A DNA stretch of 64,000 nucleotides from Macrostomum hystrix (taxonomy: Eukaryota > Animalia > Platyhelminthes): the NCBI GenBank assembly GCA_950097015.1, contig CATNEN010000001.1, forward strand, positions 4,836,001 through 4,900,000, given 5' to 3'. The position numbers and the translations under genes were made by a program. Shown here piece after piece: positions 40,580-48,112 of the stretch; position 1 is the stretch's first letter, and each line of letters begins with the position of its first letter. Below the pieces are notes generated by a model. That model worked only from the letters and a program-made list of their open reading frames with translations, did not search any database and was not told where the DNA came from.

Positions 40580-41445
40580 GTAAGTGAGTTCAAAACTTTG
40601 TTTGCAATTTCTGAAAACAGAAATTCCCCGTTTCCCAGTTCTCAAAGTCTTCCCCGTTTCCCAGTTCTCAAAATCTTCCCCATTTCCCAGTTCTCAAAGT
40701 CTTCCCCATTTCCCAATTCACAAAGTTTCCACATTTCCCAGTTCTCAAAGTCTTCCCCATTTCCCAGTTCTCAAAGTCTTCCCCATTTACCAGTTCTCAA
40801 AATCTTCCCCATTTCCCAGTTCTCAAAGTCTTCCCCATTTCCCAGTTCTCAAAATCTTCCCCATTTCCCAATTCTCAAAGTCTTCCCCAGTTCCCAGTTA
40901 TCAAAATCTTCCCCATTTCCCAATTCTCAAAGTTTCCCCATTTCCCAGTTATCAAAATCTCCCCCACTTCCTAGTTCTCAAAGTTCTCCCCATTTTCAGT
41001 TCTCAAAATCTTCCCCATTTCCCAATTCACAAAGTTTCCCCATTTCCCAGCTCTCAAAGTCTTCCCCATTTACCAGTTTTCAACATCTTCCCCATTTACC
41101 AGTTTTCAACATCTTCCCCATTTCCCAGTTCTCAAAGTTTTCCCAATTTCCCAGTTCTCAAAGTCTTCCCCATTTCCCAATTCTTCCCGTTTACCACTTG
41201 TCTAACTCCTCTGCCATACCTACAATCCATCGCCATGCAACCATACAATCAGTTGGTCTAAAAATGCCGATTGTAGCAAAAAAAGAAAAGAAATAACAAA
41301 GCATGACAAAATTGTGGGAATATATAACTTAAGTAACTCTATTCAACAACTTGTACTCAGTCTTAATGGACCAAAATTTGAGTTACTAAGTGCTTTATAC
41401 CAGTAAATTAACGATACAGTTAAACTAATATGCTCATATTTTTAG
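40580..41445 (+). other. Probable 5'UTR intron of FADF precursor gene
   Basis: GTAAGT donor at 40580; CTAAT branch at 41425 and TTTTTAG acceptor ending 41445; TATA-like TAATATAT at 40541. Confidence 0.5.
40620..41185. repeat. Minisatellite, 26-bp unit TCTTCCCCATTTCCCAGTTCTCAAAG
   Basis: Direct reading. Confidence 0.95.
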
Positions 41446-41527
41446 CAGCAAGGACTGCTAACAGACACGCGAATTCTCAACGCAGCTGCTAAGAAACACG
41501 GCTCAAACACAGCTGAGCTTAATTAAG

Positions 41528-41603
41528 ATGGGGCTGATTTCTAACAGCATCTTCGTGTCGGCTTTGCTGTTTGTTTTGCTGGCTCTGACGACTAACGCGA
41601 ACG
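41528..41603 (+). CDS. Signal-peptide exon of FADF precursor
   Basis: ATG, hydrophobic core IFVSALLFVLLAL, T-N-A cleavage-like site, consensus G|GTGAGT donor (phase 1). Confidence 0.8.
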
Positions 41604-43816
41604 GTGAGTTCCAACAATTATTGAAACTCAACTGCAGATGCGGAGAAAACTGGGTGGGAAAAATAGAGTGGGATAAAGAGAGTGGGACAAAGAGAGTGGG
41701 ATAAAGAGAGTATATAAATAGAGTGGGATAAAGAGAGTGGGATAAAGAGAGTGGGATAAAGAGAGTGGGACAAAGAGAGTGTGATAAAGAGAGTATATAA
41801 ATAGAGTGGGATAAAGAGAGTGGGATAAAGAGAGTGGGATAAAGAGAGTGGGATAAAGAGAGTGGGATAAAGAGAGTGGGATAAATAGAGTGGGATAAAG
41901 AGAGTGGGATAAAGAGAGTGGGATAAAGAGAGTGGGATAAAGAGAGTGGGATAAAGAGAGTGGGACAAAGAGAGTGGGATAAAGAGAGTATATAAATAGA
42001 GTGGGATAAAGAGAGTGGGATAAAGAGAGTGGGATAAAGAGAGTGGGACAAAGAGAGTGGGATAAAGAGAGTATATAAATAGAGTGGGATAAATAGAGTG
42101 GGATAAAGAGAGTGGGATAAATAGAGTGGGATAAATAGAGTGGGATAAAGAGAGTGGGACAAAGAGAGTGGGATAAAGAGAGTATATAAATAGAGTGGGA
42201 TAAAGAGAGTGGGATAAAGAGAGTGGGATAAAGAGAGTGGGATAAATAGAGTGGGATAAATAGGGTGGGATAAAGAGAGTGGGATAAATAGAGTGGGATA
42301 AATAGAGTGGAGAGTGAGATAAATAGAGTGGGATAAAGAGAGTGGGATAAATAGAGTGGGATAAAGAGATTGGGATAAAGAGAGTGGGATAAATAGAGTG
42401 GGATAAAGAGAGTGGGATAAATAGAGTGGGATAAAGAGAGTGGGATAAATAGAGTGGGATAAAGAGAGTGGGACGAATACAGAGGGATAAAAAGAGAGAG
42501 AGACAAATAGAGTGGGGAAGAGATGGGGTAGAAATAGAGGATAGAAAGAAAGGGTAGAAAAAGAGTTGAAAGAAACAGGGGGAGAGAAACCGAGGGGGAG
42601 AAACAAAGGGTAGAAAGAGGAGAATTGGTGGGGTGAGAAGGAGACACAGTGCGGCACAGTGTGACAGTGATTTTGTGCATAAACTGTCACTTCAATAAAG
42701 ATCACAAGGGGGCTGGTGCACCTGAGAGAGTTTTGTCTTCGGCAAGTTAAACGAACCGAATCCGTGACTTTCGAGTTGAAAATTTTGATCAGGTAGGCTT
42801 TAGGGCTCTCTGTTTTCAACATGTTGGTCTTATCAAATTAACCAGTTAAATCAGGGAAAGCATGCAGTCATGCCCAGTCTGCTTTAAAAAATAATCTAAT
42901 TTTTTCAAGTTTTCGTCTTGTTGGCGTCTAAATTGGGACATTTTGGTTCGCCGTTCAATTTACAGAGTCAGAACTGCTGGAATCTCATGCCAAGAAGCAG
43001 CAAGAACTTCTATCTGCACTTTCTTCAAAGAGATTCGCCGATTTTAACACGAAGAGATTCGCCGATTTCAAGAAAAAGAAATTCACCGATTTAAAAAAAA
43101 AGAGATTCGCAGATTTCAAGAAAAAAAGATTCACAGATTTCAAGAAAAAGAGATTCGCCGATTTCAAGAAAAAGAAATTCACCGATTTCAAGAAGAAGAG
43201 ATTCGCCGATTTCAAGAAGAAGAGATTCGCCGATTTCAAGAAGAAGAGATTCGCCGATTTCAAGAAAAAGAGATTCGCCAATTTTAAGGAGAGATTCGCC
43301 GATTTCAAGAAGAAGAGATTCGCCGATTTCAAGAAAAAGAGATTCGCCAATTTTAAGGAGAGATTCGCCGATTTCAAGAAGAAGAGATTCGCCGATTTCA
43401 AGAAGAAGAGATTCGCCGATTTCAAGAAAAAGAGATTCGCCAATTTTAAGGAGAGATTCGCCGATTTCAAGAAAAGATTCGCCGATTTCAAGAAGAGATT
43501 CGCCGATTTCAAGAAAAGATATGCCGATTTCAAGAAAAAAAGATTTGCTGATTTCAAGAAGAGATTCGCCGATTTCAAGAAAAAAAGATTCGCCGATTTC
43601 AAGAAAAAGAGATTCGCTGATTTTAAGAAAAAGAGATTCGCCGATTTAAAGGAGAGATTCGCCGATTTCAATTCGAAAAGAGTCGCCGCTTTTAGGAAGA
43701 GATTCGCCGATTTCAAGAAGAGATTCGCCGATGTAAAGAAGAGATTCGACGATTTTAAGAAAAAAAGAACAAACGATTCCATGAGAAAAAAAACCGCAGA
43801 TTTTTTCAGAATTTAG
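41528..43816 (+). CDS. Secreted multicopy FADF-peptide precursor, isoform a (308 aa)
   Basis: join(41528..41603,42966..43816), 927 nt. MGLISNSIFVSALLFVLLALTTNAN G|GTGAGT ... TTTACAG|AG gives ESELLESHAKKQQELLSALSSKR-FADFNT-KR-FADF-KKKK... about 32 units. Frame stays open, indels are multiples of 3, many synonymous variants; TAG at 43814, AATAAA at 43914. Confidence 0.8.
41660..42480. repeat. Minisatellite, 14-bp unit AGAGTGGGATAAAG (intron of FADF gene)
   Basis: Direct reading. Confidence 0.95.
42966..43816 (+). CDS. Terminal exon 2a: (KKKR-FADF)n coding repeat
   Basis: Phase-1 acceptor TTTACAG; unique spacer, then 24/21-bp coding repeats with no in-frame stop until 43814. Confidence 0.8.
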
Positions 43817-44029
43817 AGTTCTAGTTGAGCATAAATTAACGGATGATTTTGCCTACGTCAAACTTCTGCAACAAGAGATTTCGATTGTTTCAATTCTAAC
43901 TTTTACGAAGTTAAATAAATAATTTCTGAAAGATAAGAAATATGAAATACATACAGCCAGTTTTCATTTTCTATTATTGGTGCTAATTCTAAAAGAAATC
44001 TGCGATTTATAAAAACGCGGCTAGAGAGA

Positions 44030-45050
44030 GAGAGAGAAAAGGGTGAGACCATGAGAGAAGGGGTGAGACTGAGGGAAAGGGTGAGACAGCTAGGGAGAGA
44101 AATGGTGAGACAGTGAGAGAAAGGGTGAGACCATGAGAGAAAGGGTGAGACAGTGAGAGAGAAAGGGTGAGACAGCTAGGAAGAGAAAGGGTGAGACAGT
44201 GAGAGAAAGGGTGAGACCATTAGAGAAAGGGTGAGACAGTGAGAGAGAAAGGGTGAAACAGTGAGAGAAAGGGTGAGACAGCTAGGGTGAGAAAGGGTGA
44301 GACAGTGAGAGAAAGGGTGAGAAAGTGAGAGAGAAAGGGTGAGACAGCTAGGGAGAGAAAGGGTGAGACAGTGAGAGAGAAAGGGTGAGACAGCTAGGGA
44401 GAGAAAGGGTGAGACCGTGAGAGAGAAAGGGTGAGACAGCTAGGGAGAGAAAGGGTGAGACCATGAGAGAAAGGGTGAGACAGCGGGAGAGAAAGGGTGA
44501 GACAGTAAGAGAGAAAGGGTGAGACAGTGAGCGAGAAAGGGTGAGAAAGTGAGAGAGAAAGGGTGAGACCATGAGAGAAATGGTGAGACAGCGGGAGAGA
44601 AAGGGTGAGACAGTGAGAGAGAAAGGGTGAAACAGTGAGAGAAAGGGTGAGACAGCTAGGGTGAGAAAGGGTGAGACAGTGAGAGAAAGGGTGAGAAAGT
44701 GAGAGAGAAAGGGTGAGACAGCTAGGGAGAGAAAGGGTGAGACAGTGAGAGAGAAAGGGTGAGACAGCTAGGGAGAGAAAGGGTGAGACCGTGAGAGAGA
44801 AAGGGTGAGACAGCTAGGGAGAGAAAGGGTGAGACCATGAGAGAAAGGGTGAGACAGCGGGAGAGAAAGGGTGAGACAGTGAGAGAGAAAGGGTGAGACA
44901 GTGAGAGAGAAAGGGTGAGACAGTGAGAGAAAGGTTGAGACAATGAGAGAAAGGGTGAGACAGCGGGAGAGAAAGGGTGAGAGAGAAAGGGTGAGACAGT
45001 GAGAGAGAAAGGGTGAGACAGTGAGAGAAAGGGTGAGACAGTAAGAGAAG
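44030..45050. repeat. Minisatellite, about 20-24-bp unit GAGAGAAAGGGTGAGACAGT with a 374-bp higher-order duplication
   Basis: Direct reading; matching ORF-track peptides ending at 44348 and 44722. Confidence 0.95.
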
Positions 45051-45099
45051 AGGGTGTTAAAAAGAGATTTGAAAGCAGAGATTGGGATCAAGAGATTAG

Positions 45100-45260
45100 G
45101 AGGGGAGATTTCTAAGGGGTGATTTGGAAGGGGAGATTTGGAAGGGGAGATTTGGAAGGGGAGATTTGGAAGGGCAGATTTGGAAGGGGAGATTTGAAGG
45201 GGAGATTTGAAGGGGAGATTTGGAAGGGGAGATTGGAATGCGGAGATGGGGAAGACGATA
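45100..45260. repeat. Minisatellite, 14-bp unit GGGGAGATTTGGAA
   Basis: Direct reading. Confidence 0.85.
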
Positions 45261-45443
45261 TTGGAAAGGGGGGAAATTTGAAGATGAGTTTGGGAACAAG
45301 CGATTTTGAAGAGATTATCGGGAAGATATTGGGATTATAATATATTTGTTCTCAGTGGAAGATTAGGAAGACGACTTTCTAGGAAAAGTATCTAAGAAGA
45401 ACTTCTGCGCAGAACAATGTGCCCTGACACTGTTGTCCCCCAG

Positions 45444-45673
45444 GATTTGACACTGACGAATCAACTTCCGAAGTAGATCTTCAGCGGGTGACATCGCCTG
45501 AATCGAAGAGATTCACCGACTTCAAAAAGAAGAGATTCGCCGACTTCAAAAAGAAGAGATTCGCCGACTTCAAAAAGAAGAGATTCGCCGACTTCAAAAA
45601 GAAGAGATTCGCCGACTTCAAAAAGAAGAGATTCGCCGACTTTAAAAAGAAGAGATTCGCCGACTTCAAATAG
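45444..45673 (+). CDS. Alternative terminal exon 2b, open part (isoform b, about 101 aa, 7 peptide copies)
   Basis: TGTTGTCCCCCAG| (G)FDTDESTSEVDLQRVTSPESKR-FTDF-KKKR-(FADF-KKKR)5-FADFK*; phase 1, compatible with the 41603 donor. Confidence 0.6.
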
Positions 45674-48112
45674 AAGAGATTCGCCGACTTCAAAAAGAAG
45701 AGATTCGCCGACTTCAGAAAGAAGAGATTCGCCGACTTCAGAAGAAGAGATTCGCCGACTTCAAAAAGAAGAGATTCGCCGACTTCAAATAGAAGAGATT
45801 CGCCGACTTTAAAAAGAAGAGATTCGCCGACTTCAAATAGAAGAGATTCGCCGACTTCAAAAAGAAGAGATTCGCCGACTTCAGAAAGAAGAGATTCGCC
45901 GACTTCAGAAGAAGAGATTCGCCGACTTCAAAAAGAAGAGATTCGCCGACTTTAAAAAGAAGAGATTCGCCGACTTCAAATAGAAGAGATTCGCCGACTT
46001 CAAAAAGAAGAGATTCGCCGACTTCAGAAAGAAGAGATTCGCCGACTTCAAAAAGAAGAGATTCGCCGACTTCAAAAAGAAGAGATTCGCCGACTTTAAA
46101 AAGAAGAGATTCGCCGACTTCAAAAAGAAGAGATTCGCCGACTTCAAAAAGAAGAGATTCGCCGACTTTAAAAAGAAGAGATTCGCCGACTTCAAATAGA
46201 AGAGATTCGCCGACTTCAAAAAGAAGAGATTCGCCGACTTTAAAAAGAAGAGATTCGCCGACTTCAAATAGAAGAGATTCGCCGACTTCAAAAAGAAGAG
46301 ATTCGCCGACTTCAGAAAGAAGAGATTCGCCGACTTCAGAAGAAGAGATTCGCCGACTTCAAAAAGAAGAGATTCGCCGACTTCAAATAGAAGAGATTCG
46401 CCGACTTCAAATAGAAGAGACTCGCCGACTTCAAATAGAAGAGACTCGCCGACTTCAAAAAGAAGAGATTCGCCGACTTCAAATAGAAGAGATTCGCCGA
46501 CTTCAAAAAGAAGAGATTCGCCGACTTCAAAAAGAAGAGATTCGCCGACTTCAAAAAGAAGAGATTCGCCGACTTTAAAAAGAAGAGATTCGCCGACTTC
46601 AAATAGAAGAGATTCGCCGACTTCAAAAAGAAGAGATTCGCCGACTTCAGAAAGAAGAGATTCGCCGACTTCAAAAAGAAGAGATTCGCCGACTTCAAAT
46701 AGAAGAGACTCGCCGACTTCAAATAGAAGAGATTCGCCGACTTCAAAAAGAAGAGATTCGCCGACTTTAAAAAGAAGAGATTCGCCGACTTCAAATAGAA
46801 GAGATTCGCCGACTTCAGAAGAAGAGATTCGCCGACTTCAAAAAGAAGAGATTCGCCGACTTCAAATAGAAGAGATTCGCCGACTTCAAATAGAAGAGAT
46901 TCGCCGACTTCAAATAGAAGAGACTCGCCGACTTCAAAAAGAAGAGATTCGCCGACTTCAAATAGAAGAGATTCGCCGACTTCAGAAAGAAGAGATTCAC
47001 CGACTTCAGAAAGAAGAGATTCGCCGACTTCAAATAGAAAAGATTCGCCGACTTCAAAAAGAAGAGATTCGCCGAATTCAAATAGAGAAGATTCGCCGAC
47101 TTCAAATAGAAAAGATTCGCCGACTTCAAAAAGAAGAGATTCGCCGAATTCAAATAGAAAAGATTCGCCGACTTCAAATAGAAGAGATTCGCCGAATTCA
47201 AATAGAAGAGATTCGCCGACTTTAGAAGAAGAGATTCGCCGACTTCAAATAGAAAAGATTCGCCGACTTTAAATAGAAGAGATTCGCCGACTTTAAATAG
47301 AAGAGATTCGCCGACTTCAAATAGAAGAGATTCGCCGACTTTAAATAGAAGAGATTCGCCGACTTCAAATAGAAAAGATTCGCCGACTTCAAATAGAAGA
47401 GATTCGCCGAATTCAAATAGAAGAGATTCGCCGAATTCAAATAGAAGAGATTCGCCGACTTCAAAAAGAAGAGATTCGCCGACTTTAAATAGAAGAGATT
47501 CGCCGACTTCAGAAAGAAGAGATTCGCCGACTTTAAATAGAAGAGATTCGCCGACTTCAAATAGAAAAGATTCGCCGACTTCAAAAAGAAGAGATTCGCC
47601 GAATTCAAATAGAAAAGATTCGCCGACTTCAAATAGAAAAGATTCGCCGACTTCAAAAAGAAGAGATTCGCCGAATTCAAATAGAAAAGATTCGCCGACT
47701 TCAAATAGAAGAGATTCGCCGAATTCAAATAGAAGAGATTCGCCGACTTTAGAAGAAGAGATTCGCCGACTTCAAATAGAAAAGATTCGCCGACTTTAAA
47801 TAGAAGAGATTCGCCGACTTTAAATAGAAGAGATTCGCCGACTTCAAATAGAAGAGATTCGCCGACTTTAAATAGAAGAGATTCGCCGACTTCAAATAGA
47901 AAAGATTCGCCGACTTCAAATAGAAGAGATTCGCCGAATTCAAATAGAAGAGATTCGCCGAATTCAAATAGAAGAGATTCGCCGACTTCAAAAAGAAGAG
48001 ATTCACCGACTTTAAATAGAAGAGATTCGCCGACTTCAGAAAGAAGAGATTCGCCGACTTTAAATAGAAGAGATTCGCCGACTTCAGAAAGAAGAGATTC
48101 GCCGATTTTTAG
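45674..48112 (+). pseudogene. Expanded, stop- and frameshift-interrupted remainder of exon 2b (about 100 x 24-bp units)
   Basis: Unit AGATTCGCCGACTTCAAAAAGAAG with frequent AAATAGAAG variant and occasional 22-bp units; ends GCC GAT TTT TAG at 48112; AATAAA at 48377. Confidence 0.6.

Follow-up and report, generated by a model that had tools for sequence, protein, structure and literature searches.

How can a gene be recognized when it is itself built as a tandem repeat and lies among other tandem repeats? The question is raised by a stretch of the genome of the flatworm Macrostomum hystrix (GenBank assembly GCA_950097015.1, contig CATNEN010000001.1, positions 4,836,001 to 4,900,000 of the forward strand), referred to here as the window and 64,000 nucleotides (nt) long, in which 36 tandem arrays with periods of 4 to 49 nt and a Tandem Repeats Finder (TRF) score of at least 200 make up 45% of the sequence. 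Between these arrays, a hidden two-exon gene occupies roughly 2.8 kilobases (kb) on the + strand; we call it the FADF gene, after the tetrapeptide that its second exon encodes many times over. We have little doubt that this gene is real and coding. It is a protein-coding, apparently lineage-restricted gene whose first exon contributes a predicted signal peptide and whose second exon consists of a minisatellite that codes for protein. By the sequence-level features tested, it appears to work like a prohormone-type multi-copy precursor, and the peptide itself would be new.

Structure, expression and coding constraint of the FADF gene

The coding part of exon 1 (41528 to 41603, 76 nt) begins with an ATG at 41528 in a good Kozak context, with A at -3 and G at +4, and encodes 25 residues and ends, in phase 1, one base into codon 26 at AACG/gtgagt, with the donor at 41604. 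It is followed by a GT..AG intron of 1362 nt (41604 to 42965), most of which is a 14-nt minisatellite of approximately 62 copies (TRF, 41654 to 42516), and by the acceptor ttacag/AG at 42965/42966. Exon 2 (42966 to 43816), joined to exon 1 in phase 1, comprises a spacer or propeptide that in translation leads from the signal peptide to the first KR (42966 to 43027), an array of 32 FADF-type units with basic spacers of three or four residues (43028 to 43768), and a degenerate C-terminal tail with the TAG stop at 43814 to 43816 (43769 to 43816). The 3' untranslated region (UTR) extends from 43817 to the end of an AATAAA at 43914 to 43919, which lies 98 nt past the stop; the position of the poly(A) site is inferred, since RNA contigs reach only 43846. 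The joined coding sequence is 927 nt long, corresponding to 308 codons plus TAG.

Splicing was assessed in the contigs of four runs (X1 to X4) of one study dated 2020 and one organism; these contigs were aligned to positions 41450 to 45750. The junction from 41602/3 to 42965/6 is present in all four runs, with one contig per run, skipping 1362 nt between GT and AG, without a mismatch, the shorter side being no less than 117 letters long. The same contigs (42965 to 43081 in exon 2) cover the spacer, further contigs tile the FADF array, and an X1 contig (43703 to 43846) runs across the stop. Depth is zero over 41738 to 42889 in X1 to X4, including approximately 350 bases of unique intron sequence, and the contigs are therefore RNA-type assemblies rather than DNA. 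In addition, exon 1 occurs only once in the 220,453,370-base, 42-contig M. hystrix assembly, so that a retrocopy in the genome does not account for the joined form. The FADF gene is spliced and expressed. An initial annotation of this DNA, made from the sequence, had proposed a signal-peptide exon joined in phase 1 to a repeat exon, a stop at 43814 with AATAAA about 100 nt further on, and a spliced transcript across 41603/42966; all of this is borne out by the joined 308-codon reading frame and by the exact GT..AG junction.

Of the three + frames over exon 2 only the FADF frame is open, the other two containing 4 and 9 stops, and this open frame is the one into which the phase of the splice leads from the ATG exon. 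The 32 units of this array (array 1) show 55 differences from the unit consensus, which fall at codon positions 3, 1, and 2 in 34, 13, and 8 cases, respectively. In the FADF frame 29 of the 55 are synonymous, or 22 of 43 once identical units are collapsed, where the neutral expectation for the synonymous share is 15.5% at a transition/transversion ratio (kappa) of 1 and 22.6% at kappa 3 (binomial P from 4e-5 to 2e-10). The other two frames display no such excess (10/55 and 8/55), and the substitution pattern is approximately that of a ratio of nonsynonymous to synonymous substitution rates (dN/dS) of roughly 0.2. All length differences in array 1 are whole codons, because its units are only 24 nt (21 units) or 21 nt (11 units) long. 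Array 1 is the most diverged array nearby (82% matches, 8% indels), yet none of its 32 units carries a stop or a frameshift. A non-coding minisatellite should show no whole-codon preference, no stop avoidance, and no frame-specific synonymous excess; all three are present in array 1, which therefore behaves as coding. The description of the unit variation in the initial annotation as largely synonymous was thus roughly right, with an excess over the neutral ratio among units, and its statement that the indels are whole codons holds.

An internal control is provided 1.7 kb downstream by array 2 (45505 to 48105), which contains 108 copies of the same 24-nt unit, with GAC for Asp where array 1 has GAT. 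Here approximately 52 of the 108 units contain an in-frame TAG, frameshifts occur, and six units are 23 nt long. Array 2 is also more homogeneous than array 1 (93% versus 82% matches), and among its 23 distinct differences 6 are synonymous, no significant excess. It displays all three properties of a non-coding minisatellite and looks like a decayed copy or an expanded minisatellite. Since the two arrays share unit, locus, and mutational setting, the contrast lies between a spliced and expressed array that is intact in 32 of 32 units and one that is not. Purifying selection thus acts on the FADF frame of array 1, unlike the neighboring array of the same unit.

The encoded protein and its proposed processing

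The N terminus of the protein is signal-peptide-like, as judged by inspection: residues 1 to 25 include an uncharged hydrophobic stretch of 13 residues, in which the best 12-mer reaches a Kyte-Doolittle mean of 3.04, and a motif of small residues comes next, ahead of the predicted cleavage point. Exon 2 then encodes 32 unit cores, the count given in the initial annotation (about 32 FADF-type tetrapeptides between basic sites), of which 21 read FADF, three FANF, and two FTDF, with FTDL, YADF, FADL, VAAF, FADV, and FDDF occurring once each; the 11 cores other than FADF are one- or two-residue variants of it. The spacers are mostly KKKR (17), followed by KKR (6), KER (4), and KKKK (2), with NTKR, NSKR, and RKR each represented once. 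At the position directly before the core (P1), 30 of 32 units have Arg and the remaining two Lys; at P2, Lys occurs in 28 and Glu in 4. The KER sites carry Arg at P8, which agrees with the rules for monobasic cleavage. Toward the C terminus the units of array 1 become degenerate. The mature protein of 284 residues comprises 83 Lys, 61 Phe, 34 Arg, 32 Ala, and 31 Asp, amounting to 41% Lys plus Arg (29% Lys) and 21% Phe; its net charge is +78, and acidic spacers are all but absent. The initial annotation had put the basic share at about 50%, a somewhat high figure for a protein that is indeed strongly basic.

These features are those of multi-copy neuropeptide and peptide-hormone precursors, in which a signal peptide and a spacer lead into a long tandem series of one short conserved peptide. 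Mono-, di-, or polybasic sites lie on either side of each copy, the copies at the ends are degenerate, and the genes are small and have few exons. Precursors of the FMRFamide type are reportedly of this kind, as are orphan "multi-copy peptide" (MCP) precursors said to be catalogued in spiralian and xenacoelomorph neuropeptidomes. The FADF gene combines a signal peptide (by inspection), multiple basic-flanked copies, a spliced mRNA with coding constraint, and a genome that encodes convertase domains, the proprotein-convertase P domain (P_proprotein, PF01483) being found above the Pfam cut-off at no fewer than six loci. In addition, a four-residue core that is kept at the amino acid level while the DNA varies silently is the pattern that a released peptide predicts.

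In the best-supported reading, to which we give about an even chance, the gene would encode a convertase-processed multi-copy precursor that releases FADF peptides. The 308-residue precursor would enter the endoplasmic reticulum and lose its signal peptide near residues 23 to 25, after which subtilisin-like proprotein convertases of the secretory pathway would cut after the KR, KKR, KKKR, or KKKK runs and an enzyme of the carboxypeptidase E/D type would trim the basic tails. The products would be approximately 32 free, non-amidated tetrapeptides, 21 of them FADF, together with FANF, FTDF, and the single variants, and KER sites that stay uncut would leave a few longer peptides. Once released, FADF peptides could serve as extracellular signals, whether as neuropeptide, hormone, or pheromone-like cue. 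The very high copy number of the unit might be a by-product of the strong tendency of this genome to expand 24-nt repeats.

Several observations weigh against this reading, some on the side of the peptide and some on the side of the gene. A charge of +78, spacers that are mostly tetrabasic, and the near absence of acidic spacers to balance them are unusual for prohormones. No amidation Gly follows the cores in the FADF units, and flatworm neuropeptides are mostly amidated. On these counts, and in having no known orthologue, the protein differs from the multi-copy precursors that it otherwise resembles. The 5' UTR contains upstream open reading frames. Many of the differences counted as synonymous are AAG/AAA exchanges within Lys runs, and the differences are not independent events, because unit variants spread by duplication. 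The independent 3-nt indels may likewise number as few as one to three, and slippage in (AAG)n favors steps of 3 nt. The constraint is seen inside the array only, with no orthologue found in other species. Finally, X1 to X4 come from one study and represent up to four samples, and the record carries no statement that the data are RNA.

The composition also lends itself to another explanation, already named as the alternative in the initial annotation, which we consider nearly as likely as processing and which, at somewhat over one chance in three, is a serious contender: the protein would be secreted essentially uncut, or partly cut, as a Lys/Phe-rich polycation whose basic runs are functional in themselves rather than cleavage sites. 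Such a protein could be a component of a gland glue or coacervate (adhesive, rhabdite, seminal, or egg-shell) or could be membrane-active or antimicrobial. Its 83 Lys, 61 Phe, and +78 charge in 284 residues, with hardly any acidic spacer, are extreme for a prohormone. Lysine together with aromatic residues is the composition of cation-pi adhesives, and the make-up of the FADF protein is glue-like in this sense. A structural model made with AlphaFold2 from the single sequence yields two long helices (predicted local distance difference test [pLDDT], 79; predicted template modeling score [pTM], 0.22), which lends the polycation weak support at best; such output is typical for charged repeats, and we judge the model uninformative for that reason. 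Within the genus itself, the Macrostomum adhesive protein Mlig-ap1 consists for about two-thirds of a Lys/Arg-rich repetitive region (PMC8621496). The FADF protein resembles ap1 in being a secreted Macrostomum protein with strongly cationic low-complexity repeats (PMC8621496). However, the adhesives ap1 and ap2 are giant proteins built from several kinds of domain (vWD, TIL, EGF, lectin), and their repeats are of Gly-Arg-Lys, whereas the FADF protein is far smaller at 308 residues and has its FADF core set between basic runs. None of the domains of the ap1/ap2 core (vWD, TIL, C8, EGF, lectin, TSP-1) is found in it above the Pfam cut-off, and without these domains it is not an adhesive of the ap1/ap2 type. 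Three further points speak for cleavage instead. Selection on composition alone would not need a tetrapeptide core to be kept at the amino acid level with synonymous variation underneath; the Arg that immediately precedes the core, at P1, in 30 of 32 units is the signature of a cleavage site and not of a random mixture of Lys and Arg; and 32 good convertase sites are unlikely to stay uncut in a secretory pathway that holds convertases.

Relatives of the protein and identity of the putative peptide

Searches for relatives were made with the two exons queried separately. Among 5.8 billion proteins, exon 2 retrieved only one spurious metagenomic repeat protein, and its unique first 46 residues retrieved no match. 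A phmmer search of 1.84 billion representatives returned 238 low-complexity matches, of which those inspected are unrelated repeats that share the period of eight residues, none of them with a K/R-flanked FADF. Pfam gave no family above the cut-off and one sub-threshold match attributable to chance, the best score in the ESM Atlas (0.81) is at noise level, and a full-text literature search returned nothing relevant on FADF as a neuropeptide or on basic-flanked FADF strings. In the searches run, the FADF protein is without known relatives and without a named precursor family, in line with the initial annotation, which had not recognized FADF as a described family.

Among the closest known systems is achatin, GFAD in Achatina, whose family comprises spiralian peptides of the form G-aromatic-x-D that carry a D-amino acid at position 2. 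Both are non-amidated tetrapeptides with F-A-D inside that come from a multi-copy precursor with basic sites. In the FADF gene, however, the register is shifted: the cores start with Phe, Tyr, or Val directly after Arg or Lys, and Asp, at position 3 of 4, is followed by Phe or Leu. Gly, which opens the achatin form G-(F/Y)-x-D, stands at position 1 in none of the 32 units, and no homology to achatin precursors emerged from the searches of 5.8 billion and 1.84 billion proteins, by which short-peptide precursors are hard to detect. With the N-terminal Gly absent from all 32 units and a different register, the FADF gene is not a member of the achatin family. The kinship suggested in the initial annotation thus holds for the shared F-A-D in a shifted register and fails as a family link. 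By analogy with achatin or dermorphin, a D-amino acid may be present at position 2 of FADF. A second parallel is offered by fungal repeat proteins processed by Kex2, such as the Ustilago Rep1 repellents and the yeast alpha-factor precursor. In these, too, a signal peptide precedes many short KR-separated repeats that are cut by a kexin-type convertase, and the products need not be neuronal signals. The resemblance is one of analogy only, without homology.

The new peptide signaling system that the initial annotation had suggested is a plausible reading. In its most specific form, FADF (with FANF and FTDF) would be a novel, Macrostomum-restricted signaling tetrapeptide with its own receptor, present in approximately 32 copies per precursor and encoded by a coding minisatellite that was born or expanded through the repeat-generating machinery of the genome; this is a tentative proposal that we think possible rather than probable. 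If FADF peptides are made, they would constitute an undescribed non-amidated peptide messenger in a model genus of flatworms for work on regeneration, adhesion, and sexual selection, for which RNA interference and in situ tools are at hand.

The second array and the minisatellite-rich genome

Array 2 also bears on which transcript would deliver the peptides. Its wider region (45444 to 48105, + strand) lies behind an acceptor at 45442 to 45443 that shares phase 1 with the exon 1 donor, and opens with an acidic spacer, KR, and seven in-frame units that run to a TAG at 45671 to 45673, with approximately 100 units thereafter. An alternative terminal exon starting at 45444 would give a short isoform of seven units, possibly the main source of functional product. 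We regard this as unlikely: no contig lies on 45338 to 45750 and depth there is nil in any of the four runs, although contigs cannot prove absence; the sole joint from 41602/3 leads to 42965/6; and the flanks of array 2 have no homology to those of exon 2. A seven-unit isoform keeps a small probability in spite of the missing contig support, because contigs drop rare isoforms. The comparison of the flanks also bears on the origin of array 2. Segmental duplication was considered and rejected, since a simple duplication of exon 2 is unsupported when the flanks of the two arrays are not homologous.

Beyond the window, a DNA search of the genome recovers the FADF unit nowhere else than in these two arrays. 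A protein-level search with exon 2, in contrast, matched dozens of loci. These are 24-nt-type minisatellites with stop-free units (for example, C12:2622000-2631999 and C5:2012000-2021999); their open frames span 455 to 2,749 codons, and often two or three frames are open, as are both strands. They were rejected as FADF paralogues, being unrelated minisatellites that are open in several frames. When the genome is searched at the protein level in six frames, stop-free minisatellites of this kind turn up as strong but false "homologues". Since minisatellites here can reach 2,749 open codons, an open frame by itself is not evidence of coding, and long open frames through repeats in the M. hystrix genome are untrustworthy without RNA and substitution-pattern evidence.

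The same background could give rise to a transcribed minisatellite with no functional protein, if a promoter and a pair of splice sites by chance transcribed an array whose consensus unit is stop-free, the reading frame being young or accidental and the RNA non-coding or noise. Such an origin would fit a window that is 45% tandem array, a genome with long open 24-nt minisatellites elsewhere, a plainly non-coding array of the FADF unit next door, a minus strand of array 1 that is open as well, the upstream reading frames in the 5' UTR, and the lack of a known orthologue. It is nevertheless very improbable, given that only the FADF frame shows the synonymous excess, which the control array lacks, that the only open + frame is the one entered by the splice from an ATG exon with good Kozak context and a 13-residue hydrophobic core, and that the most diverged array nearby has no stop or frameshift in 32 units.

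Whatever the function of the protein, the locus is a natural experiment in which two arrays of one 24-nt unit lie 1.7 kb apart, one kept in frame and the other decaying or expanding. It shows the way in which a genome prone to repeats can enlarge multi-copy genes for secreted peptides and possibly bring them into being. Should the signaling role of FADF prove true, the decayed sister array would show a birth-and-death cycle of peptide-encoding repeats. Genes such as this one are hidden from annotation by repeat masking.

Some smaller features of array 1 and of the transcript were also observed. A 69-nt higher-order repeat is visible in array 1. One X1 contig contains a joint that goes back 90 letters, at 43609 to 43698 within the coding array, which may be a repeat artefact of the assembly graph or a copy-number variant in the sequenced animals. 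On the minus strand, array 1 is open for 265 codons (42985 to 43782), which read as a repeat rich in Leu, Phe, Ser, Ala, and Asn; this antisense frame is probably meaningless, since the GT..AG orientation places transcription on the + strand.

At the 5' end, three of the junction contigs reach 85, 83, and 68 letters upstream of 41450, that is, to approximately 41365 if they are collinear with the genome, which would give the 5' UTR a minimum extent of 41365 to 41527. Some 40 nt upstream of these contig ends, a TATA-like motif read from the sequence (41321 to 41327) may represent the core promoter. Upstream ATGs at 41366 and 41430 open two short reading frames in the apparent 5' UTR, at 41366 to 41389 and 41430 to 41492, of 8 and 21 codons including the stop. 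An acceptor-like ttttag/CA at 41444 to 41445 marks a possible trans-splice or upstream-exon junction, and an X3 contig begins at 41448.

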